The notes under the pieces: generated by a model
Seen by the model: the letters and a program-made list of their open reading frames with translations, nothing else
The model's database searches: none
What the model was told of the DNA's origin: nothing
NCBI GenBank assembly: GCA_002269645.1
Contig: NIVC01000646.1
Location: 248,001 to 312,000, forward strand
Length of the DNA stretch: 64,000 nucleotides
Reading direction: 5' to 3'
DNA from: Macrostomum lignano
Lineage: Eukaryota
Made by a program: the position numbers and the translations under genes
Part shown: positions 3,633 to 44,702 of the stretch, piece after piece
Numbering within the stretch: position 1 is the first letter of the stretch
Layout of the letters: each line of letters begins with the position of its first letter

Positions 3633-4214
3633 AATCAGGCACTTCTGAAGTCTGCAGTAGAGGGGCTGCGCCTTTATCCAAGTGCCAAGTGCCTCAAAGT
3701 TTACCAACGCTAACAAATTGAACGATTTAATTGAATACTTACCTAATGCAGATACATGTAGTTCTCTGTTTGAACTCGTTCGACTCACTGCAGGATGCGC
3801 AAAGCTCTTTATTGGCGTCCGGAGGAGACACGCACGGGTCAGAGAGAGAGAGAGAGGAACCCACATTCAACATTTAACGAGTCGCAGAGAAAAGCACAAC
3901 TGCATGCATTAGACTAAATGAGGCTCATCTTACGCTTGGACTGGCCGTATTTGCCCGGAGGCACGAACCTGCAGAGGTGCCCCCCGATCTCTTTGCTCTG
4001 CACACAGACTTCACCGTGCCCCCCCCAGTGCGGCCGGCTGAATCTCGTTTATTGCCGGGCCACTTAGCCGTGCGTTTTTGATCCTCTCTGCTTTCGCTGC
4101 TGCTGGCCTCTGCCTGCCGTGTCTTCTTTTTGCTTCTTTCGCACGCGGTCGCAGACTAGAACTAATTGCACACTCTCTCCTTTCACCCCAGATTTTCTCT
4201 CGCGCCTACCTTTC

Positions 4215-5225
4215 CTGTATTCCTATCTCTATTCTCTCCCTGTCTTTTTCCTATCTCCTCCAATCTCTATTCTCTCCGTCTATTTCTTATCTCTCTCCCC
4301 CAATATCTATTCTCTTCCTGTCTATCTCCTATCTCTCCCCCCAATATCTATTCTCTCCCTGTCTATTTCCTATCTCTCCCCCCCCCAATATCTATTCTCT
4401 CCCTGTCTATTTCCTATCTCTCCCCCCCCAATATCTATTCTCTCCCTGTCTATTTCCTATCTCTCTCCCCCAATATCTATTCTCTCCCTGTCTATCTCCT
4501 ATCTCCCCCCCCCAATATCTATTCTCTCCCTGTCTATCTCCTATCTCTCTCCCCCAATATCTATTCTCTCCCTGTCTATCTTCTATCTCTCTCCCCCAAT
4601 ATCTATTCTCTCTCCGTCTATCTTCTATCTCTCTCCCCCAATATCTATTCTCTCCCTGTCTATCTCCTATCTCTCTCCCACAATATCTATTCTCTCCCTG
4701 TCTATTTCCTATCTTTCTCCTCCAATCTCTATTCTCTCCCTATCTATCTCCTATCTCTCTCCCCAAATATCTATTCTCTCCCTGTCTATTTCCTATCTTT
4801 CTCCTCCAATCTCTATTCTCTCCCTGTCTATTTCCTATCTCTCTCCTCCCATCTCTATTCTCTCCCTAACCATCTTCTATCCATCTCTTAATTCTATTCT
4901 CTCCGTCTATCTCCTATCCCTCGCCTATCTCTATTCTCTCCCTGTCTATTTCCTATCTTTCTCCTCCAATCTCTATTCTCTCCCTATCTATCTCCTATCT
5001 CTCTCCCCAAATATCTATTCTCTCCCTGTCTATTTCCTATCTTTCTCCTCCAATCTCTATTCTCTCCCTGTCTATTTCCTATCTCTCTCCTCCCATCTCT
5101 ATTCTCTCCCTAACCATCTTCTATCCAACTCTTAATTCTATTCTCTCCGTCTATCTCCTATCCCTCGCCTATCTCTATTCTCTCCCTGACCATCTCCTAC
5201 CCATCTCATATTCTCTCCCTGTCCT
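4215..5225. repeat. CT-rich minisatellite (about 40-bp unit)
   Basis: Repeated CCCCAATATCTATTCTCTCCCTGTCTATYTCCTATCTCTCT; accounts for the low-complexity ORFs at 4078-5135. Confidence 0.93.
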
Positions 5226-5838
5226 CCATAGCCTATGTCTACAGCCTATAGCCTACAGAGATCTATAACCCTGCCTTGCATGTACTCGCTACACAGAGAG
5301 CTCGAATGAACAGCAGGAAGTGGGCCATGCGTGCAGTAATAAGCCATCTAATTCTTCCTGCCCATTAAAATGATAGACGAAACAGTATAATCAGACAACG
5401 ATTTTCTAAGCAGGCTCCAATTTAAGCTCAATTAAATATCTCATAAAACAACTTCCGGCTGTCTGGCGAGATGAGAGGGAGTGCAATTCTCCTTTTAAAG
5501 AAAAAACCAATAAGAATACGATGACTCTTATTGCCTACTTATAGTACAATAGCTTTACCACAAGTAACTGAAATAACTTTTTTGATCTAATAATTTGTGA
5601 CTATCAACAATCAAAAATGAAGAAATCTGGTAAATATTTGAACTCAATGAGTATTTGAACTCAAAAGACATCTAATGAATATGCAATGCATTATAATTAA
5701 AGTATATTTTCATCACAATTTATATTTTCTATCAATTGAAACAGGCTCGACACACATTTAGAGGATCGTTTCTGTGAGGCTTTTTGGAAATGCGGAATCA
5801 ACTGCTTGTGCTGAGTCACTGGGCCTCTGCGTGCCTTG

Positions 5839-6439: not shown

Positions 6440-6870
6440 AACTGATGTCCCATCCTAACAAATAAATGTACTTTACTATCATGACCTAAATGATGTCACA
6501 CCCTAAAAAACAATACTGTCCTGACCTAAATGACGTCCCATCCTAACAAACAAATGTACTTTACTGTCCTGACCTAAATGACGTCACATCCTGACAAACA
6601 AATGTACTTTACTGTCCTGACCTAAATGACGTCACATCCTGACAAACAAATGTACTTTACTGTCCTGACCTAAATGACGTCACATCCTGACAAACAAATG
6701 TACTTTACTGTCCTGACCTAAATGACGTCACATCCTGACAAACAAATGTACTTTCCTGTCCTGACCTAAATGACGTTACATCCTGACAAACAAATGTACT
6801 TTCCTGTCCTGACCTAAATGACGTCATATTCTAATAAATAGATGCAATTTACTGTCCTGATCTAAATGAG
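6440..6870. repeat. 48-bp minisatellite
   Basis: CTGACCTAAATGACGTCACATCCTGACAAACAAATGTACTTTACTGTC, about 8 copies with degenerate ends. Confidence 0.93.
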
Positions 6871-7278
6871 GTTATAAATATCTAAATATCCAGAAGGCGC
6901 TTTCAAAAGCCCCAATGATAAATAACTACAGAAGCATGAAATACGGATAACACAGTAGATCTAGACATTTTTTTCTTCTAACGAGCGGCAATTCCCGAAA
7001 AACGGAAAACGCCTAAAAAAGGAGCAGTGAAAAAATTTTTTGTCGTTAGGCGGGCAGGGCAGGTTTTTGGCATCGAATGCTGCATGATCGAACAATAGTA
7101 AGCATGCGACTCAAAATAGTTTTTGCTCTGCGCTCTGCGTCACGACTTCATATACATACAAATCTATAAATATAATTGTTGTGCGGCAAAATCTCTGTTC
7201 TTTTTGTTTGGAAAATAAGCAGAAAAATATGAGTCTTAAGCACACTAAGCATTTAGTATAGCTCGTAGTTAAATTAGC

Positions 7279-7830
7279 ATGATGAGACATCTATACACGA
7301 TGAGACATCTAGACACGATGAGACATCCAGACATGATGAGACATCTAGACACGATGAGACATCCAGACACGATGAGACATCTAGACATGATGAGACATCT
7401 AGACACGATGAGACATCCAGACATGATGAGACATCTAGACACGATGAGACATCCAGACACGATGAGACATCCAGACATGATGAGACATCTAGACATGATG
7501 AGACATCTAGACACGATGAGACATCCAGACATGATGAGACATCCAGACATGATGAGACATCTAGACACGATGAGACATCCAGACATGATGAGACATCCAG
7601 ACATGATGAGACATCCAGACATGATGAGACATCGAGACATGAGACATTCAGAAATGATAAAGACATCGAGACAGGATAAGACATCTGGACATGATGAAAC
7701 ATTTGGACATGAGTAGACATTTGGACATGAGAATACATAAAAAAATAAGGGAGACATTAAAGACATGATAAGACATATAGACATAACAGCCAAACGACAT
7801 AGGGAGACATCTTGACATGATGAGACAACC
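7279..7830. repeat. 18-bp minisatellite
   Basis: ATGAGACATCYAGACAYG repeated. Confidence 0.93.
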
Positions 7831-7943
7831 GACACGAGGAGAAGTAGCAGAATTATAAATTAAATCAACTGCTAAAAATAATAAGAAAACTAAGCATAAA
7901 ATGCTACTGACAGGCTTCTATACCAGTAGGCGGGAAAGCTTTG

Positions 7944-8740
7944 TCAGGACTGCGGCGGGTTCCAGGCCGACACGCCCATGTCGAATGTGAAAGCGCCTTC
8001 GCTGCCACCGCCGCGACCGCCGCCGACGCTGTACGCGCCGCGGTCGGCGCCACCGCTCCCGGACATGAGGTTGACCACTTGGCCAGTGTCGTCAGTCAGA
8101 GCGATGGCCGGCGAAGATGGAGCCACGGCGAATGCGGCAGCGGCGGCGGTGGAGGTGAAGGCGCTGGCGGAGGCCGCCGTGCTGGACAGCAGCGCCCCGG
8201 CTCGAATCTTGGCGTTCAACGACTCGATGGCGGCCAGGTCCATTTCGTCGTCCGAGTCCTCAGCGACGGCGGCGGCAGTGACTGTTGATGTAGGCGACGC
8301 TGGAGACGGCGACCATTGAATGTGCGGCTGCTGCAGGCCCGGTGGCATCGGCAGAGGACTCTGCGGAGATAGAAGGTCCATGGCTGCGGCTACCGTTGCT
8401 GAAGCCGCTGCCGCAGCCGCTGCAGCTGCGGCGGAAGCGGACGAAGCGCCGCCGGGATCTGAGCGAGCCTGGGAGGCCCGGCGGGAAGATGCGGCGGCGG
8501 CCGACATCAGTTCGTGCAGCAGGGCCGACCTGCTGGTGACTCCGTAGTAGCCGCCGCCTCCACCGCCTGATGTAGACGAGGCCGACGAGCCTTCGCTGCA
8601 GCGGCGACGGGCGGCGGCCGCTAAGAAATGTTGCGCAGACACGGGCGGCTTCTCGACGCCGCCACCTGCTAACCGACCAGCGCCACCGCCTCCGCCGCGC
8701 TCTGAACAGCTGCCGTGTCGGCGTAGAAACAGCTGACCGC
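7944..8740 (-). CDS. SIK: Salt-inducible kinase, exon 5 (last; low-complexity C-terminal tail)
   Basis: Acceptor CCCTCAG at 8741-8742. Its phase 1 matches the exon 4 donor. Reads S-GQLFLRRHGS...RRAS...WNPPQS-stop and carries PKA-type RRxS motifs. No domain homology confirms the junction. Confidence 0.7.
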
Positions 8741-8844
8741 CTGAGGGTGCATCGTAAAAATAAATCTTGACCCGCCTAGTAGGCAATTATTGCTCATTGG
8801 ATAGAGCTGCTTCAGAATGCCACAAAATTTTATTCCCCTACGCC

Positions 8845-9350
8845 CCAATTTTAATCAAGTCTGACCCTTATCTGTGCGTCTCTTCGCTTTTTGGCTGGAG
8901 CCGCTGCCCACCCCCGAATTTCCTTTCTGACGCCCCTCACTCTCAATTTTAATCAAACTGGCTAAAGTCTGACCCTGATCTGTGCGTCTCTTCGCTTATT
9001 GGCTGGAGCCGCTGCCCCACTCCCGAATTTCCTTTCCCAATTTTAATCAAACTGGCTAAAGTCTGACCCTTATCTGTGCGTCTCTTCGCTTATTGGCTGG
9101 AGCCGCTGCCCCACTCCCGAATTTCCTTTCCGACACCCCTCACTCCCAATTGTAATCAAACTGGCTAAACGTATGACCCTTATCTGTGCTGTGCGTCTCT
9201 TCGCTTATTGGCTGGAGCCGCTGCCCCACCCCGAATTTCCTTTCTGACGCCTCTCACTCGTAATTTTAATCAAACTGGCTAAAGTCTGACCTTTATCTGT
9301 GCGTCTCTTCGCTTTTTGGCTGGAGCCGCTGCCCCACCCCCAAAAGTTCC
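8845..9350. repeat. About 110-bp tandem repeat, about 5 copies (SIK intron 4)
   Basis: Repeated AATTTTAATCAAACTGGCTAAAGTCTGACCCTTATCTGTGCGTCTCTTCGCTTATTGGCTGGAGCCGCTGCCCCAC. Confidence 0.9.
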
Positions 9351-10107
9351 TTTTCAATGCCTCCACTTATTGGATATAATATATGGATAACTGCAGATTT
9401 TAAACACAGATAAAGAATGAATGCAAATCACAGGCAACCAAAAGCAAGAATTTAATGCAAGCTTTCCGTAAAGCAAAAATCTGTGTTCCAGACATTTGTG
9501 AACCTGCACGGAACACAAAGCATTCGACTCAGAAACAGGAACAGCTAAATTTGTCCCTGTCCAACAAGATTGCACTTACTCAACACTAACTTCAAATGAG
9601 AAATTGGGGATCTTAACAGGAAACAGCAAAGCCACGCGGACAAATAAAAGCATAGTCCAAAAATAGAGCTACAAAAGCATTGCTTTTGTTCTCGCTTACT
9701 CCAACCTCCTATTTGAGGAAAAAAGCCTTCAAACAGACTGGCTGAAGACTCACTAAATAGATTGGCCACTAAATAATACACGTCTAAGGTTTTACAAATC
9801 AACTGCCGACAGACACATGGGCGCACTTTTATCTAACATTTTTGCCGCATCTTTTACTTCCACTGTCTCGTTTACATTTATCAAGTTTTCTTTTGAGGCC
9901 TCCGCGAAGTTGAAGAGAACACTCGGGGGAAAACTACAAGGCTGCCATGCGTCACGTACTAGTCGTACTAGTACGACGTACTAGTCATCAATCATCATGT
10001 AGAATTGCAGTGCCAACATGCGACTGTGACTTGAAATTTCTTTCAACTAAACTAATACAAAGTGAAAACTTAGTATGAAACAACTTTTTAAAATTCATTC
10101 TACGCTG

Positions 10108-29579: not shown

Positions 29580-30593
29580 TCACCTCGGTTCAGCTCGACG
29601 CCGAGGCTGGCAAGTCAGTAGGCTAACAAGTGACCGTCGGAAGGCGGCATAGAAAGTGAGAAAGATGGTCAGGTTACAAAACACTCCCAGGCAAGACCAA
29701 GCAGAGGTGGCATAGTAGAGGCACAGGCCCAGGTGGAACAGACCGTCAGCGTCGAAGAGGCCCAGCTGCGTGGCGGCCAGCACAGTAGCGTAGGGAGCAT
29801 TGAACATAGTGCTGGCCAGCGCAGCTAGCATTAAAACCCTGGTCAGCTGGCCGCGGCGCCGGCCTCTCAACAGGCGGCAGACGCTGTAGGCGCTTAGCAA
29901 CAAATTGAGCGCTACGGGCAGCACGTAAGTTAGAGCGAGTGTTTCGAATATTGCGTAATAGAGGAACTCCTGGCGCCGCTCGATGGCGCACAGCATGTTG
30001 GCCCTGTCGGTCTCGCCATTTGGCGCACCAACAAAAACAAGGCGAGGCGAGGCGGCGGCGGCCAGAGCGCAGAACTCGGCGCCGCTGAGCAGGAGGCCGC
30101 CGCGCAGGTCACTGAGACCGCCGCGTCGAGGTCGTCGAAATGGCCGACAGAGGGCGGCGCAGAGCTCCGCGGAGAGCGTCACCACTGTCCAGTTGGAGAC
30201 GGACTTGCACAGGAAGTAGCCATAGTAGAGGGCCTTGCAGAGCGCGGCACCGCTGTCTAACGGTAGGCCGCCCGACCCAATCAGCTGGGTGATTGCTGCC
30301 AGACAGGAAGCGTGCAGTGAGTCGCTAATCGCCATGGCAACCAGGTACCAGTGGCACGAGTAGCGCATGCCCCGGTGAAGCACGGCCATAACTACTAACA
30401 GGTTGGCAATGCAGCTGAGAACTCCAGTTGCCAGGTAGAGACGAAACTGATGCGGTCTCCAGGACTTCTGCGTGTGATAACAGAGCGGACAGGCGGCAGG
30501 GTCGGCTGGGCAGCTCTGATTGGCTGCTAAGCTCAGGGAGGCGCCCAGCCAATGGGGGCCAAATCTGAAAGTCGAGGTTTTACACAGACACAT
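29580..30593 (-). CDS. Divergent class A (rhodopsin-like) GPCR, probably peptide-receptor-like
   Basis: 337-aa ORF with about 7 hydrophobic segments, TM1 N (IANLLV), TM2 MAISD, conserved TM3 Cys (LCK), TM5 LP, TM6 NAPY and a basic helix 8 (FRRSL). The start codon is uncertain. Confidence 0.85.
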   Translation of the reverse strand: MCLCKTSTFRFGPHWLGASLSLAANQSCPADPAACPLCYHTQKSWRPHQFRLYLATGVLSCIANLLVVMAVLHRGMRYSCHWYLVAMAISDSLHASCLAAITQLIGSGGLPLDSGAALCKALYYGYFLCKSVSNWTVVTLSAELCAALCRPFRRPRRGGLSDLRGGLLLSGAEFCALAAAASPRLVFVGAPNGETDRANMLCAIERRQEFLYYAIFETLALTYVLPVALNLLLSAYSVCRLLRGRRRGQLTRVLMLAALASTMFNAPYATVLAATQLGLFDADGLFHLGLCLYYATSAWSCLGVFCNLTIFLTFYAAFRRSLVSLLTCQPRRRAEPR

Positions 30594-31454: not shown

Positions 31455-32150
31455 ACGACCCAATACAACCCCAAAAAACACCAACAAAACACCAACAATA
31501 ACACCCAACACAACACCCAACAAAACACCAACAAACACCCAGCACAACCCCAACAAAACACCAACAAAACACCCAACACAACACCCAACACAACACCCAA
31601 CAAAACACCAATAAAACACTTAACACAACACCCAACACAAAACACCAACAAAACACCCAACACAACACCCAACACAACACCCAACAAAACACCAATAAAA
31701 CACTTAACACAACACCCAACACAAAACACCAACAAAACACCCAACACAACACCCAACACAACACCCAACACAACACGCAACAAAATACACAACACAACAC
31801 ACAACACAACACCCAAACAACCCCAACACAACACCCAGAACAACCCCAACACAACACCCAGAATAACCCCAACACAACACCCAAACAACCCCAACACAAC
31901 ACCCAGAACAACCCCAACACAACACCCAGAATAACCCCAACACAACACCAAGAACAACCCCAACACAACACCCAGAACAACCCCAACACAACACCAAGAA
32001 CAACCCCAACACAACACCAAGAACAACCCCAACACAACACCAAGAACAACCCCAACACAACACCAAGAACAACTCCAACACAACACCCAGAACAACCCCA
32101 ACACAACACCCAGGACAACCGCAACAGAGCCAAAACACAACACCCAGCTC
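31455..32150. repeat. CA-rich 24-bp minisatellite
   Basis: CAGAACAACCCCAACACAACACCC repeated; same family as 37580-38097. Confidence 0.93.
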
Positions 32151-36420: not shown

Positions 36421-37071
36421 TGCTCTCCTATCTCCTCTCTTCTTTCGCCTCTCCTTTCTTCTATCCCTCTTTTCTATTGCGTCTGACTCTCTCCCCTCCT
36501 CTTACCCACAGTCATGCTCTATATTCTCTATTTGGCCCTTGAGATAAACTGTTTTTCCGACCCCTGGCCTAAGTTAAGGTCTGCTCTGACGGTTTGGCAC
36601 TCGGGTTTAAAATCATCCAAAATTTGTCAAGCATCAAGCCGAAGTCTCCCACTCACCATTTTCACAGTCTGGCACTGGCTTATGCTGTTTGTGGCCACAA
36701 ATCGAGTGCAAATTTCACGAAAACTTCAGCGGACAGTCTGCCGATATTAAAAAGTATGTATAAGTCTGTGCTGCGCTTGTCTGGGTGGTCTCCGCCCGAC
36801 CTTATCTAGGAGTAAATGGAGCAGTTTCGACTCTCAGAGAGAAAGAGCGGGTTTTCTACAGGTTCTAAAGAAAGGTTGAAATACCTTTTCATTCATTATC
36901 TGTCTTTTTGTATAAGCCGCACTGCGCAGTGTTCGAGGCAAGTTGTTTATGCGCTTGGCAAATATCGGAGGCAGCAGTTAAATTCCAGCCTGGCGACTAT
37001 CAATGGCTCAGTGCTCTCGATTCTGCGCAAGCAACTGCACTGCGCAGCTTTCATCGAAAGTTCGTGCACTC

Positions 37072-38097
37072 AACTCCAGCACAACTCCAACACAACTCCA
37101 GCACAACTCCAGCACAACTCCAGCACAACTCCAACACAATCCCAGCACAACTCCAGCACAACTCCAACACAATCCCAGCACAACTCCAGCACAACTCCAA
37201 CACAATCCCAGCACAACTCCAGCACAACTCCAGCACAACTCCAGCACAACTCCAGCACAACTCCAGCACAACTCCAGCACAACTCCAGCACAACTCCAGC
37301 ACAACTCCAGCACAACTCCAGCACAACTCCAGCACAACTCCAACACAATCCCAGCACAACTCCAGCACAACTCCAACACAATCCCAGCACAACTCCAACA
37401 CAACCCCAGCACAACTCCAGCACAACTCCAGCACAACTCCAACACAACCCCAGCACAACTCCAGCACAACTCCAGCACAACTCCAACACAACCCCAGCAC
37501 AACTCCAGCACAACTCCAACACAATCCCAGCACAACTCCAACACAACCCCAGCACAACTCCAACACAACTCCAGCACAACCCCAACAAAACACCCAGCAC
37601 AACCCGAGCAAAACACCCAGCACAACCCCAACACAACACCCAGAACAACCCCAACAAAACACCCAGCACAACCCCAACACAACACCCAGCACAACCCCAA
37701 CACAACACCCAGCACAACCCCAACACAACACCCAGCACAACCCCAACACAACACCCAGCACAACCCCAACACAACACCCAGCACAACCCCAACACAACAC
37801 CCAGCACAACCCCAACACAACACCCAGAACAACCCCAACAAAACACCCAGCACAACCCCAACAAAACACCCAGCACAACCCCAACACAACACCCAGCACA
37901 ACCCCAACACAACACCCAGCACAACCCCAACACAACACCCAGCACAACCCCAACACAACACCCAGCACAACCCCAACAAAACACCCAGCACAACCCCAAC
38001 AAAACACCCAGCACAACCCCAACAAAACACCCAGCACAACCCCAACACAACACCCAGCACAACCCCAACAAAACACCCAGCACAACCCAACAAAACA
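37072..38097. repeat. CA-rich array switching from an 11-bp to a 24-bp unit
   Basis: CAGCACAACTC units up to about 37575, then CAGCACAACCCCAACACAACACCC units. Confidence 0.95.
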
Positions 38098-39435
38098 CTT
38101 TAGTGCCCCAAAGCAAAACATGAATACGCGATGTTGGCGAAAGCGAAAGCAGTAACGAGGCCTCCAAAGCCGAAGCAACAACGGGAAAGCGCGCGAAAGA
38201 AAAAAATTAAAGGAAACGGAACATAGAAAAGCTGATGCCAACGTCAAACGAGAGATCCCACACCTCTAGCAAACACGACGGAAGCCGCCAAGCCCTGCTG
38301 CGACTGCGGGAGATACCGCTGCACTGAGTCGCTCTTCCAGTCACCGATCCGCATGATGTCGGACACCGGCACACCCAACACCGAGGCCCAAGTCGCGCCG
38401 CCACGGCGGAGGCTGTGGGCTGAGAAGTGCTCACGCCTGAAGCCCGCAGCCCCTAGCTTGTCCGCTAGGAAGCGATCGAGCTGCCTGCCTGTCAGCAGCC
38501 GCTGGTTGCCTCCGGCGTCGCGATAAGTGAACAGAGGCGCATCAGCCGATTGCAGATTATTGAATCTTGCGTGCTGCTCGATTGCTAACACCGGGCACAG
38601 CGAAGTCCGCCTCACTAGCCTTGGTAGAAGCACCTGGTGCACCCGCTCTTTGAACTGGAGAGTCTTCCCTTGCTCCAGGCGCAAGATCAGACCTCTCGGG
38701 TGTCGAAAGATATCAGCGCAGCGCACCCGTGCCGGACCTTTTCCCGAAGTCGGCAGCACGCTGGATTTTCGAAGCATGCCCCACCAACAGCAGATGGTGA
38801 CTGCCCAGCATGCCAGCTGAAGCCCGTCAGAACGACTGACTCGCTGATGAATCTCCGACAACATGAGCGGCGATGCTGGTCGTTTTCTCGACACCCGAAG
38901 TCCCAGCTCTCGCTTGGCGCCTCGCAGGAGGAGAGCATGCTTTGTCAGATCTGGTGCAGAGTTGACGCGAAACCATACGGACAGCGAGCTGGCGACAGAA
39001 GCAACGCTGCCGTACGCTCGCAAACGCGTCCCGACTAGGCTGGCCAGGTAGTCGAGCAGGCTGTTTAGCGGACAGGATACAGGACTGCAGCGGGTCTGCT
39101 TGCAGTAAGCTAGCCACTCACGGGTGTGCCTTGCCACCGCCTGCCTCGACCGTGGTGCATAGGAGACGCCTAGCAGCGACGCGGCCCGGCGGCTGAGAGA
39201 TTCTGGCGCAGCTGGACGGCCTGAAAATGAAGAAAGTGGGCAGAGGCAGGGCAGAAAGCATGTCGATGCATTGATTGCAAAAAAAAGAACTGCGCGAAAA
39301 CACTGCCAGCTCAGCAGCGCGGCTGGAATAACACCCCCCTCGCCGGCGGAGGGGTGGGCGCCCGACTAAACAACACAGAACGTACACACGCGGCGGGGGG
39401 GGGGCGCACAGACGCAGCGCGCTTGGGCACTAAAG
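38098..39435 (-). mobile_element. Putative compact tyrosine-recombinase-only element
   Basis: CTTTAGTGCCC (38098-38108) and GGGCACTAAAG (39425-39435) form a perfect 11-bp inverted repeat around the YR gene; no gag, RT or RNase H nearby. Confidence 0.45.
38244..39220 (-). CDS. Tyrosine recombinase (phage-integrase fold), DIRS/Ngaro-like
   Basis: Catalytic residues intact: R (GMLRK), K (GKT), HSLR, W (GDW), Y (QRY). The frame stays open upstream of the GTG at 39137 (SRRAASLLGVSYAPRSR) to a strong acceptor at 39221-39222; no in-frame ATG near the 5' end. Confidence 0.9.
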
Positions 39436-39897
39436 CCGGTTTGCTCAACGCAAGCCTAGCGCAAACCGCAGCCCAACATAACACCCAACACAAATCACAA
39501 CTTTAGCACCACACAAATTAGCACAGCAAGCACAGCACCGCCCCAGTACAACACTTTCAATGCAGCATTTTGGCTCTTTTAGAATGTTCAGTTTTAATAT
39601 GTACTTTTAGCCAACGGCAGAAAACGAACGCAAGGCTTACACAGCAGTTGCTTTAACAACAATAATCTGATTGACAAGACCAAAGTTTGCAGCACTTTAC
39701 GAGCCGACGGCCTGTGCCAAGCGGCCATAGACGCTCAATCTGAGCACTGGGTGGTGCCTGAGGCAGTTGTCTATGGCCATAAGTGAATCAGTGCCAGGGG
39801 CTCCTAAAGCCCGAACCCGATGCTTAGGACTGACTCTCGCTCATGCTGTCAGTGCTTGATCGGAACGTTACCCATTTCTAGCTCGCACGCTAAACAG

Positions 39898-40568
39898 ATG
39901 CAAAGGCTATTGAAGTTTTTTAAGAAAGACGCGGTCAACACTGCCGAAGATATTGCCGAAGAACCACAAGCTTTTGTTAAAACTGCTTCAGAAATTCAAG
40001 AAGACGACTGCGACGACAAACCAACTACTGAAGTTGAGGACACCGAAGGCAAGGATATGACAGCGGCTGACCAGCAGGAAAATGACAGAGACTCGGCGAA
40101 GGTGGAAGAAGCTGCTGGCAACGAAGAACAACAAAAGCAGCAAGAACAAAAGAAGCAGGAGGCGGAGAAGCCGCATGCCCAGATAATGGACTTCAAGGAG
40201 ACTACGACGACGAATGAAGTTTGCAGTGCTGCATCATCCGATAAGTTGATAAGTCCACACGGAGACGCTGTCTATGGTAGTGCCGTCAGCGAGGATCTGC
40301 AGACGACAGCAACCGCCAGCACTAACAGCGGCAGCGGCAGCATCATCACCAGTAGTAGCAAAGGTGTAGGCGTTGTAAATGGCGAAGTTGGCGGCAGCAA
40401 CAGCGTCAGCGTCTCGGACAGCTGCAGCTGGGAAACGAAGACCAAGGACGCTGGTAAGGTTGCAGAGAATGGCGACACGGCCAGAATCAACGCCAAGGCT
40501 GAGGAGTCCGGCTGCGACCTGGCGCTAAAGCTCGGCAAGCCGGAAGTGATTCACCCGCTGCAGAATTC
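39898..40568 (+). CDS. eIF4E: eIF4E, exon 1 (long acidic N-terminal extension)
   Basis: Open frame ending ...EVIHPLQN-S|GTAAG. An alternative in-frame ATG lies at 39820; the 39898 ATG is directly preceded by a CAG acceptor-like sequence. Confidence 0.75.
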
Positions 40569-40635
40569 GTAAGCATTTAGTTGGATTTTCTAATTTATAG
40601 ACTCAATTATTGAGCCGTCAGTTTTCCACTTCCAG

Positions 40636-41155
40636 CTGGGGCATCTGGTGCTTCATGCAGAACCGCAGTCAGGACTGGCACGAGAACGTCCGGCACATCA
40701 GCAATTTCTCCTCCGTGGAGGACTTCTGGTCGCTGTTCAATCACATCCAGACGGTGGACAATCTGCCTGTCGGCTGCGACTATTACATCTTCAAGGCGAG
40801 CATTCAACCCATGTGGGAGGACCGCGCCAATATCAACGGCGGCCGCTGGCTGCTGAAGGTGCCGCACTCGCATCCAACATTCGTACAGCTGTGGATTGAG
40901 ACTCTGCTGCTGCTAGTTGGCGAGGCGTTCGAATCCGAGTCCGAATCGGTCTGCGGCGCCGTGGCGCAGGTCCGGCGCGGCTTCAACAAGATCAGCATTT
41001 GGACTAGGGATGCCGCCAATCGTGGCGCCTGCATGCGCATCGGCTACAGGTGGAAGGCCTGCCTAAAGGCCGCCGCCCCCATTCATTACGAGGCTCACCT
41101 GGAGGTCAACAGGAAGAACGGACGGCGCAGCAAGAGCGTCTACTCCATCAACTGA
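40636..41155 (+). CDS. eIF4E: eIF4E class I cap-binding domain, exon 2
   Basis: 67-bp GT-AG intron; HPLQNSWGIW...QDW...VEDFWSLFNHI...PMWED..NINGGRW...KISIW with all class I tryptophans. Confidence 0.95.
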
Positions 41156-41324: not shown

Positions 41325-42741
41325 GTCATTAGAGGCCGGGGGGTCTGTGTGCACCTTGGCGCACTTTAAGCGACATTGACGAGAGGCATTGCTGCCCATT
41401 CCGCCCGACTCCCCTGAGCAGGTGTTGTACTCGCGGGCTGCGATCTCGTCTAGCCCGGTCGTTTTGTTTCCCCGGGGTAGCGGGTTCGGTGCGGGACTGC
41501 CCCGGGCGCGCGGCGGAGGGATGGACAGAGGACGAACGACTGGCGCTCCTCGAGGCGGATGGCCACTCCGAGGGGAAGAGGAAGAGATGCGACCCGGGGC
41601 GCACAGGCACTCCTTGGTCACGGAAGGCTCGGGGTACTTCCGCGGTCAGCGGAGCGGATAGCCACTCAGAGCCGGCCCGGGAGTCACCGAGATGAATGTG
41701 AAACGAGGTGAAGGTGAAGGATTGGCCGGGGCGTACAGACACTCCGGACCAATCAAGAGATACGAGGTGATGGATTAGCTGGGGCGTACAGACACTCCAA
41801 GCCAATCGAAGAGTGCAGGTGAGCAAGGGGGTGAGTAGGTGAAGCGATGAGGCGGCGAGGATGGAGGGAAGACACGTGCAGAGAGCCCCAAAAAACGCGA
41901 ACGCAACCCGAATAAACGTAATTTAAGCTCACCGGGCGGGGTCGAACCGACTCATACGGCGTGGCGCAGTTTATTTAGCCGTTTTAATAACTGTTCTGGT
42001 AGCTCGGAGACGGCGGGTGGCACGGATTCGCTTGCTACGAAGTGTTCCGATAGTTTACTGGGCTCGTGCAGTTTTGTACTTTTATGATAGTTTTCTTACT
42101 CAGTTGCTGGTGTAGCTCTAACCGCAAAAACCAAGCAGCGTGCCACCGGCCGGCTCCAAGCCAGCTAATAAATAGTATGCCAAAAAATGGGGGAGTGGGC
42201 CAAACCGGCCTGAGCGCAAATACTCACACAACAGAACCCCGCGAGCACCCCACCCTAGCCCAGCCAATCAAAACATGCGCTGGGTAAGGCTTTACGAACG
42301 GGGGGTAGAAAAGCGAGGGTCTGCCGGCCCAGCCAGCCAATCAGAGCACACGCCGGCTGCCCAAAACCAAAGCCGGCTGAACCAACTCAAACCAGCTAGG
42401 CCGGCAGACCGGGCGGTTCGCATGCACAAAAAAACATGTTGATGAGAAGGTCATTGTGGCGCAGGCCACAACACAGGCACACAAGCGCGCGGATACGTAC
42501 GCAGTCATACGCACAGGCACACACTCACACAGGAGTGCACAGTGGCCCTAACTTTATTTATCGTTAGGCATGTACACTTCACTGCGCCTTGGGGGTTGGC
42601 CCTCAAGCTGGGCGTTAATTGCACGAGCAGAGCCAAGCCGAGATTCCAATTTAGCCCCAAATTAATGTGACTGCACTGGGAATCGAGCCTGGGCCGCTGG
42701 CACTTCAGAGCGCCGCGCTGGACCACTGGGCTACGGCCCCC
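41325..42741 (-). mobile_element. tRNA-derived SINE (family A) split by a solo LTR
   Basis: Head GGGGCCGTAGCCCAGTGGTCC...GGCTCGATTCCC at the right end; the two halves rejoin to match the 22222-22575 copy. Confidence 0.85.
41423..42473. mobile_element. Solo LTR (Ty3/Gypsy-like), 1051 bp
   Basis: TGTTGT...ACAACA termini, 4-bp TSD CAGG (41419-41422 and 42474-42477), internal AATAAA (41911) and CCAAT boxes. Confidence 0.85.
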
Positions 42742-43538: not shown

Positions 43539-44702
43539 ATGAGCAAGAAACCGGTGCAGATCCCGCCTGGCTTCAAGGAGCTGCTGCAGGAGTTCACCGT
43601 CGCCGTGCTGCGCGAGGCGCCCGACAATGTCGTTGACTTCGCCATCGACTACTTCACCCGGATGCGGCTCAAACGGATGCACCACTCTGAGGCTGGCGGG
43701 GACGACGAGGCCGGCAGCGAGGCCGCCGGCTCCGAGGCCGAGTCCGACTTCGACGAGCCGATGCCACCGCCAATGCAGAGTCGGGGACCTCGCCGAGTAG
43801 CCGTGGCTGGCGAGAGCTTCGACCCGGAGAAAGAAGACGACGACGACACCCCGATCCCCATCCACCCGAAGACGGAGGACCAGCGGTGCCGGCTGAACGA
43901 GGCCGTCAAGCACATCCTGCTGTTCCGCTGCCTGGACGAGGACCAGATGCATGACGTCATCAACGCCATGTTCGAGCGGCGCTGCCAACCAGGCGACCGG
44001 ATCATCACGCAGGGCGAGGACGGCGACAATTTCTACGTGATCGAGTCGGGAGTCTACGACATCTACGTCCTGATCAACGGCCAGGACACCAAGGTCGGGA
44101 AGTACGACAACCAGGGCTCCTTCGGCGAGCTCGCGCTGATGTACAACGCTCCGCGGGCTGCCACCATCCAGTGCGCCTCCCCCGGCAGCATCTGGGCGAT
44201 GGACCGCGACACTTTCCGCCGTCTGGTGCTGAAGAAGGCCTTCCAGAAGCGAGTGATGTACGAGAACCTCATCGACTCCGTGCCGCTGCTCAAGGAGCTG
44301 GCGCCCTACGAACGGATGAACGTCGCCGATGCGCTGAAGTCGAAGGCCTACGCTGACGGCGACCGGATCATCGCGCAGGGCGAGCCCGGCAACGAGATGT
44401 ACTTTGTAGAGGAGGGCGAGGTCCGCATAACGCGGCGCTCGGCTGACGGCGACGAAGTGGAGATCTCGCGCCTGCAGAAGGGCGGCTACTTCGGCGAGCT
44501 GGCCCTGCTGACCAAGCAGCCGCGGGCCGCCAATGTCTACGCCTGCGGCGGCCGCTGCAAAGTTGCCGTGCTGGACGTCGGCTCCTTCGAGCGGCTGCTC
44601 GGCCCCTGCCTGGACATCATGCGCCGCTCCATCGACAACTACCAGCAGCAGCTCACCAGCCTGTTCGGCAGTCTGGAGGCCGTGCCCGACCTGCGCGGCT
44701 GA
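43539..44702 (+). CDS. PRKAR2: cAMP-dependent protein kinase type II regulatory subunit (intronless)
   Basis: RII-type D/D domain (IPPGFKELLQEFTVAVLR) and two cyclic-nucleotide-binding domains with intact phosphate-binding cassettes (FGELALMYNAPRAAT, FGELALLTKQPRAAN). Confidence 0.96.
   Translation: MSKKPVQIPPGFKELLQEFTVAVLREAPDNVVDFAIDYFTRMRLKRMHHSEAGGDDEAGSEAAGSEAESDFDEPMPPPMQSRGPRRVAVAGESFDPEKEDDDDTPIPIHPKTEDQRCRLNEAVKHILLFRCLDEDQMHDVINAMFERRCQPGDRIITQGEDGDNFYVIESGVYDIYVLINGQDTKVGKYDNQGSFGELALMYNAPRAATIQCASPGSIWAMDRDTFRRLVLKKAFQKRVMYENLIDSVPLLKELAPYERMNVADALKSKAYADGDRIIAQGEPGNEMYFVEEGEVRITRRSADGDEVEISRLQKGGYFGELALLTKQPRAANVYACGGRCKVAVLDVGSFERLLGPCLDIMRRSIDNYQQQLTSLFGSLEAVPDLRG

Follow-up and report, generated by a model that had tools for sequence, protein, structure and literature searches.

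We analysed a 64,000-nucleotide stretch of the genome of the flatworm Macrostomum lignano (GenBank assembly GCA_002269645.1, contig NIVC01000646.1, forward-strand positions 248,001 to 312,000; hereafter the window, with positions counted from its first letter). The window contains a tyrosine recombinase (YR) gene enclosed by a short inverted repeat, and the unit so delimited, at 38098-39435 on the minus strand, is probably an internally deleted copy of a Ngaro-like YR retrotransposon that retains both of its true ends. An earlier note on this DNA had favoured a compact YR DNA element devoid of reverse transcriptase (RT), or a domesticated recombinase, and had kept an internally deleted DIRS or Ngaro copy as its null hypothesis. 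The favoured inference is not supported by our analysis. It is the null hypothesis that agrees with what we found: relatives of the recombinase are organised as gag, RT/RNase H (RT/RH) and YR, a remnant of the RT/RH frame is still attached to the gene, and the joined ends of the unit match the circle junction of a relative.

The YR frame is open from 39365 to 38247, comprising 373 sense codons followed by a stop at 38246-38244, and its conserved part begins at about 39230. The motifs GMLRKS, KTLQFKER, HSLRRGGAT and GDWKSD are all found within it. Pfam gave only a weak Phage_integrase match to the protein, and no match to DUF3504 even at E values up to 1. A family profile that combined the window protein with 26 homologues matched Cre with an E value of 3.6e-21, in an alignment that spans both domains. 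The GMLR, KT, HSLRRGG, GDW and RY residues of the window protein fall in register with the catalytic residues of Cre, which places it in the Cre-like tyrosine recombinase superfamily; the aligned Cre residues we take to be R173, K201, H289, R292, W315 and Y324. With all six residues placed by the profile alignment, the earlier description of a catalytically complete R-K-HxxR-W-Y recombinase of DIRS/Ngaro type holds. An AlphaFold model made from the same alignment had a mean predicted local distance difference test score (pLDDT) of 90.8 and a predicted template modelling (TM) score of 0.86, and displays the two-domain fold of a helical core-binding domain and a catalytic domain. The top Foldseek matches to this model in the PDB were all Cre or Tre structures, with TM scores of 0.64-0.73 over about 310-340 columns. 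By sequence and predicted fold, the window YR is a Cre-like tyrosine recombinase with a full catalytic set.

The first ATG of the frame appears only at codon 167 or thereabouts, past the N-terminal core-binding domain. The gene had been called intact, and this is true of its open frame and catalytic set, but the term needs qualification for a frame that has no ATG ahead of that point. The M. lignano spliced leader terminates in ATG (PMC8629364), and we considered an upstream exon or the spliced leader as the source of a start codon. This was rejected, as the three YTNCAG acceptors upstream (39322, 39220 and 39084) are all out of frame. Exact-sequence look-ups of the open reading frame (ORF), in a GTG-start version of 297 amino acids and an ATG-start version of 206, returned no match.

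A protein search over 5.8 billion clusters returned 96 matches, and the nearest of these belong to RT-bearing elements. The best, P0001 on contig L001, is 56% identical to the window YR and lies directly downstream of a frameshifted RT and RNase H. P0002 (47% identity) is on L002, a Logan contig carrying a SAP-domain ORF1, an ORF with RVT_1 and RT_RNaseH domains, and an overlapping YR; the ends of this contig are identical over 30 nt (1-30 = 4148-4177), giving a circular or tandem unit of 4147 bp. P0003 on L007 (32%) shows the same gag(SAP)-RT/RH-YR order. In M. lignano itself, P0006 on L005 (32%) is the last ORF of a full element, with the SAP ORF1 at 5042-5797, RT/RH at 6513-8104 and the YR at 7977-9041. 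In L002 the YR frame opens about 60 amino acids past RNase H; in L005 and L007 it overlaps the RT ORF. We then scanned metagenome contigs, which yielded 80 further YR loci. Upstream RT/RH homology on the same strand was present in 35 of the 37 whose YR is preceded by 1.5 kb or more of sequence, so that sharing an element with RT/RNase H is a property of these loci as well as of L001, L002, L005 and L007. Two further metagenome loci, with less than 1 kb of upstream flank, have RT downstream of the YR. The remaining two of the 37 loci, L070 and L080, show no RT/RH homology in upstream flanks of 1.8-3 kb and could be further RT-less derivatives. A short Logan contig of about 1.3 kb that carries only a YR (L006) was considered as a circular RT-less element and rejected, since it has no terminal overlap and is merely a short contig.

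Ngaro elements are told from DIRS1 and PAT elements by architecture, by a methyltransferase-like domain and by the position of their repeats (PMC4157794, PMC9210276). Pfam identified only RVT_1 and RT_RNaseH in the relatives, with no methyltransferase-like domain separating RNase H from the YR, in a search that used no dedicated DIRS-methyltransferase model. The direct repeat of L005 at 4877-5109 recurs at 9173-9407, downstream of the YR, and a partial third copy is also present. Since the relatives carry repeats 3' of the YR and leave no space for a methyltransferase-like domain, they are Ngaro-like rather than DIRS1- or PAT-like (PMC4157794). The Ngaro elements of the DIRS order, such as zebrafish DrNgaro1 and Cafeteria types 1-4 with the 5'-deleted type 2b, have the structure A1-[gag, RT/RH, YR]-B1A2B2, and the relatives show the matching order of gag(SAP), RT/RNase H and YR. 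The YRs with which the window YR clusters are placed downstream of RT/RNase H and overlap it, and the ORF1 of the relatives is gag-like, though it bears a SAP domain; the window copy itself differs from Ngaro in having no gag, RT, RH or A2/B2 repeats. The Ngaro-like assignment of the family is one of architecture. DIRS1 is distinguished by long inverted terminal repeats, an internal complementary region and a methyltransferase-like domain, none of which we found in the relatives (PMC4157794, PMC9210276). Within the unit we likewise found no DIRS1-type internal complementary region and no long inverted terminal repeats, the inverted repeat being 11 bp only, and this short repeat and the methyltransferase-like domain of PAT, not seen in the relatives, also set the family apart from PAT.

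What sets the window copy apart from these relatives is the loss of its RT half. The absence of gag and RT beside the YR, reported earlier, extends to the whole window: tblastn searches with the gag and RT/RH of L002, L001 and L005 found no match in its 64 kb other than the RT/RH-frame tail. Homology to L001 and L002 continues upstream past the YR through the overlap of the RT/RH and YR frames, where CTTTCTNCATTTTCAGG is conserved in the nucleotide alignment, and comes to an abrupt end at about 39299. A deletion would be expected to leave just such an RT/RH stub joined to the upstream side of the YR, and we place the internal deletion of gag-RT-RH at the inner end of the leader, at about 39300. 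The unit thus encodes no gag and no RT/RNase H, and with only the RT/RH-frame tail kept it is a deletion derivative and not a complete Ngaro-like member. Ngaro elements with deletions are known from Cafeteria (PMC8547959). Retrocopying of a spliced sub-genomic YR mRNA was rejected as the origin of the break; homology to L001 carries on upstream of a CAG motif, a conserved acceptor-like sequence, and the break therefore does not mark a splice junction.

The ends of the unit are given by a perfect 11-bp inverted repeat that encloses the YR (Table 1). Taken alone this repeat is not significant, since a perfect 11-bp inverted repeat arises somewhere in the 1.47 kb in 26% of Markov shuffles, and another lies inside the YR ORF. 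The positions of its arms are less easily matched by shuffling: 21 of 20,000 shuffles placed one arm at the edge of the array and its partner within 170 bp upstream of where homology breaks off, although the test windows were chosen post hoc. YR retroelements such as the DIRS1-like and PAT-like ones are thought to integrate via a circle whose junction is mirrored internally. We joined the last 50-60 nt of the unit to its first 50-60 nt, as they would meet in a circle. The joined ends align contiguously with L002 4116-4187, a non-coding stretch between YR and gag, with a score of 40. Shuffled joined ends scored 22.5 +/- 2.6 and none of 300 reached 40 (z about 6.7), and neither each end alone nor a join in the wrong order gave a significant match to L002. 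The matching stretch of L002 contains two tandem GCACTAA-N6/7-TTTGTGC sites, at 4136-4156 and 15-34 (equivalent to 4162-4181), and L036 carries GCACTAAAG directly 3' of its YR. The earlier claim that the inverted repeat marks the ends of the unit gains from this match. We read the GGGCACTAAAG/CTTTAGTGCCC repeat, with moderate confidence, as probably the palindromic recombination site that the family carries at its circle junction, here split into two halves; the confidence is no higher because the reading rests on one relative at roughly 70% identity. Palindromes with short spacers (9-10-bp arms, 6-7-bp spacer) were also observed in L005 (4923-4949 and 9219-9245) and L007 (41-64 and 4482-4505), repeated in the 5' and 3' repeat regions, and are candidate YR core sites.

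The same evidence bears on a simpler possibility, that the unit is a random 5'-truncated fragment, in which case the right boundary would be no element end, the repeat coincidental and 39300-39435 unrelated DNA. The frequency of such repeats in shuffled DNA and the second repeat within the ORF fit this account, as does the failure of either end alone to match L002. Past its first 36 nt or so, the leader has no detectable homology to the relatives, and neither the 3' untranslated region (UTR) nor the leader showed significant nucleotide homology to L001, L005 or the L005 A repeat. The account is, however, at odds with the positional shuffle test, with the match of the joined ends and the failure of the reversed join, and with the presence of related palindromic motifs twice in L002 and once beside the L036 YR. 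We regard a random fragment as unlikely.

If the unit is indeed a deleted Ngaro-like copy with true ends, its history may be reconstructed as follows. A full-length member of the family would make circular DNA whose junction is the short palindrome GGGCACTAAAG|CTTTAGTGCCC. The Cre-like YR would recombine this palindrome with chromosomal DNA, leaving the insertion bounded by a half-site on either side, and this would be the origin of the 11-bp inverted repeat. The copy would have inserted into a CA-rich minisatellite or at its margin, and the roughly 2.7 kb that run from the 5' leader through RNase H would have been lost either before integration or in situ. What is left would be the leader, the RT/RH-frame tail, the whole YR frame and the 3' UTR, in a unit that presumably arose before the two M. 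lignano copies of the locus, described below, separated and that is incapable of autonomous retrotransposition.

A second contig of the same assembly, NIVC01000296.1 (L004), has the gene order of the window and carries the YR unit at the matching site. Window 38090-39171 aligns to L004 5753-6834 without gaps and with 8 mismatches in 1082 bp, and both 11-bp repeat arms are identical. L004 lacks window 39172-39312 (junction 6834/6835), an in-frame deletion of 141 bp between 7-bp AGCAGCG direct repeats, which takes away the leader of the YR frame and the RT/RH-frame stub and spares the conserved YR. The sole in-frame AG upstream of the YR (39365) is not kept in L004. As both contigs hold the unit, the insertion and the loss of RT are older than the split of the two loci, and no empty site is available; the unit is fixed beside eIF4E in M. 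lignano. The species has been described as a hidden polyploid following a recent whole-genome duplication (PMC10468722), and it may be that the two contigs are haplotigs rather than old duplicates. Between the YR codons of the two copies there are 4 synonymous and 3 non-synonymous differences, with proportions per site of 0.016 (pS) and 0.0044 (pN). The pS equals that of the neighbouring gene for the regulatory subunit of protein kinase A (PKA-R; 0.018) and the rate in the non-coding flanks (88/4835 = 1.8%). The 3' UTR is conserved between the two copies to the same degree as the ORF.

Several findings weigh against our interpretation of the unit as a deleted copy. The YR frame is fully open and keeps every conserved position of the family. 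Between the two M. lignano copies pN/pS is 0.27, with a one-sided binomial P of 0.08 from only 7 substitutions. The unit has diverged by 0.74% (8/1082) against 1.8% in the non-coding flanks, for which the Poisson P is 0.0025 at a rate of 1.8% and 0.10 at a rate of 1.2%. The A1...B1A2B2 split direct repeats of canonical Ngaro are missing from the unit, and we found no direct repeats between its 5' and 3' regions. The junction match comes from a single relative, in an alignment that spans 73 columns, contains six gaps and is roughly 70% identical. Finally, the best M. lignano protein match to the window YR is only 32% identical and no near-identical full-length parent was found, so that the deletion is deduced from relatives at 47-56% identity. 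The earlier note had looked to near-identical, full-length relatives bearing RT as the sign of a simple deletion product; relatives bearing RT do exist, but at 56% and 47% identity only.

The low pN/pS and the lower divergence of the unit are not what would be expected of a purely neutral relic, though the numbers are small, and together they give a weak hint of constraint. It is possible, then, that a Ngaro-derived YR has been domesticated or otherwise constrained, either as a Cre-like enzyme kept by the host or as a recombinase acting in trans on related elements. The 373 open codons, the 29 conserved family positions and the intact catalytic set would fit such a role, as would a pS at the local neutral rate with a pN four times lower, the reduced divergence of the unit relative to its flanks at the 1.8% rate, and the in-frame deletion of the second copy that spares the conserved domain. 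Set against these are the 7 substitutions on which the ratio depends and the loss of significance in divergence at a neutral rate of 1.2%. Both copies lack an ATG before the conserved domain as well as an in-frame consensus spliced-leader acceptor, and the equal conservation of 3' UTR and ORF would fit young age or gene conversion just as well. The possible haplotig status of the two contigs counts in the same direction. No YR orthologue or annotated transcript product was found, with no protein above 56% identity in the 5.8 billion clusters and the exact look-ups empty. An orthologue route via the neighbouring eIF4E gene gave only M. lignano entries and one 42% match, and no locus from another Macrostomum was obtained. 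We consider domestication improbable on this evidence.

The unit might also be a compact RT-less DNA transposon, derived from Ngaro and moving as DNA in the manner of a Crypton by means of its own YR and palindromic ends. It contains a complete YR frame and both half-sites, and the two metagenome loci L070 and L080 are also without RT. An element of this kind is very unlikely here, however. There is a single copy in the window, both contigs are occupied and no empty site was seen; the attached RT/RH-frame stub fits a deletion and not a streamlined element, and the frame has no start codon. Once integrated, moreover, the half-sites would be hybrid sites, from which excision is not guaranteed.

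As noted earlier, a CA-rich array lies to the left of the unit, a hairpin and a degenerate CA-rich stretch to its right and eIF4E upstream, and all of these were located as described. The array proper covers 37071-38088. The hairpin (39437-39468) has a perfect 8-bp stem, lies outside the element and carries a stem mismatch in L004. Between the right-hand CA-rich stretch and a sister CA array at 31458-32146 the match is about 87%. The presence of CA-like sequence on both sides suggests insertion of the element within an array or at its border. It had been proposed that the YR targets or remodels CA-rich repeats. Tandem Repeats Finder, however, identified 37 separate arrays in the window, with periods of 4-177 bp and mostly unrelated units, which cover 44% of it with a median gap of 605 bp; any 1.3-kb feature here adjoins an array, and adjacency therefore means little. 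With arrays throughout the window and no YR near the sister CA array, we rejected an association with arrays, and the proposal that the YR builds or targets the CA arrays finds no support. The arrays and their spacers form a quasi-regular pattern across the window (1-64000). In L001 a short-period tandem array of TTCACTTGACA units is present at 2708-2840, about 100 bp past the YR stop, which may be a coincidence in an array-rich host genome or may reflect a shared insertion preference.

Table 1. Features of the YR unit and its immediate flanks, in window coordinates; element parts are given in element orientation.
Feature	Position	Strand	Remarks
Whole unit, probable internally deleted Ngaro-like YR retrotransposon copy of 1338 bp: 5' leader, RT/RH-frame tail, YR, 3' UTR	38098..39435	-	Ends set by the inverted repeat; joined ends match the L002 circle junction; unit and site shared by L004
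Candidate 5' terminal half-site, CTTTAGTGCCC	39425..39435	-	Aligns to L002 TTTGTGCGCC beside the other half-site; identical in L004
5' leader	39300..39424	-	Only the first ~36 nt resemble the L002 junction region
YR frame, 373 sense codons and stop	38244..39365	-	All 13 invariant and all 16 near-invariant family positions kept
Remaining C-terminal tail of RT/RNase H frame, overlapping the YR-frame leader	39118..39299	-	tblastn with the L001 RH-tail frame, E 1e-10; nucleotide alignment to L001 and L002
3' UTR, YR stop to 3' half-site	38109..38243	-	About 135-146 nt against about 180 nt in L002; one mismatch against L004
Candidate 3' terminal half-site, GGGCACTAAAG	38098..38108	-	Aligns to L002 GCGCACTAATG; L036 has GCACTAAAG immediately 3' of its YR
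CA-rich tandem array, 11/23-bp period	37071..38097	.	Abuts the 3' end of the element and lies outside it; also in L004
Right flank: 33-nt hairpin segment (39436-39468), then degenerate CA-rich stretch	39436..39550	.	Related to the array at 31458-32146

Among the neighbouring genes, eIF4E (BOX15_Mlig016507g2) occupies 39820-41155, with a single 67-bp intron at 40569-40635 and a long acidic, Q-rich N-terminal extension. An intronless gene for a type II PKA-R follows at 43539-44702; its ORF, at 43539-44699, matches an NCBI protein exactly, with M. lignano PAA86047.1 as the 90% cluster representative. This gene and an intronless ORF for a rhodopsin-family G-protein-coupled receptor, at 29580-30593, flank the region. 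A segment of about 1047 bp, window 41423-42469, is absent from L004; it starts with TGTTGT, ends with ACAACA, lies between the copies of a 4-bp CAGG duplication and looks like a solo long terminal repeat insertion that is polymorphic between the two loci. An Rfam scan of the window identified no known RNA family.

Two further systems invite comparison. Like Cryptons and the DUF3504 genes domesticated from them (KCTD1, ZMYM2-4, QRICH1, WOC), the window has a stand-alone YR ORF with no RT; unlike those of Cryptons, the relatives of its YR are linked to RT, and it has no DUF3504 match. The YRs of animal CryptonA elements match DUF3504, whereas those of DIRS and Ngaro elements are reported not to (PMC3212892). 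The domesticated Crypton genes have lost their catalytic residues, while the window ORF keeps all of them (PMC3212892). The Cre/loxP system of phage P1 is the best match in sequence and fold over both domains, and Cre has the identical catalytic set, including the Trp. The target of Cre is a short palindromic site, of which the window YR has a candidate; identity is about 18%, the window YR comes from a eukaryotic host element, and its recombinase activity is predicted.

As it stands, the finding is one of routine transposon annotation, a Ngaro-like deletion derivative in a repeat-rich flatworm genome. That purifying selection maintains an active Ngaro-derived YR at the eIF4E-PKA-R locus in both its copies, or that this YR forms the core of an RT-less DNA element born of a retroelement, seems to us improbable. 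Constraint, if confirmed in other Macrostomum species, would mean that an animal has kept an active tyrosine recombinase derived from a retrotransposon, and we know of no reported example. Were domestication true, the enzyme would be an active YR, in contrast to the catalytically dead DUF3504 genes derived from Cryptons. To our knowledge the integration sites of Ngaro elements are poorly defined, and the 22-bp palindrome GGGCACTAAAGCTTTAGTGCCC provides a concrete candidate recombination site, paired with a compact Cre-like enzyme predicted at high confidence.

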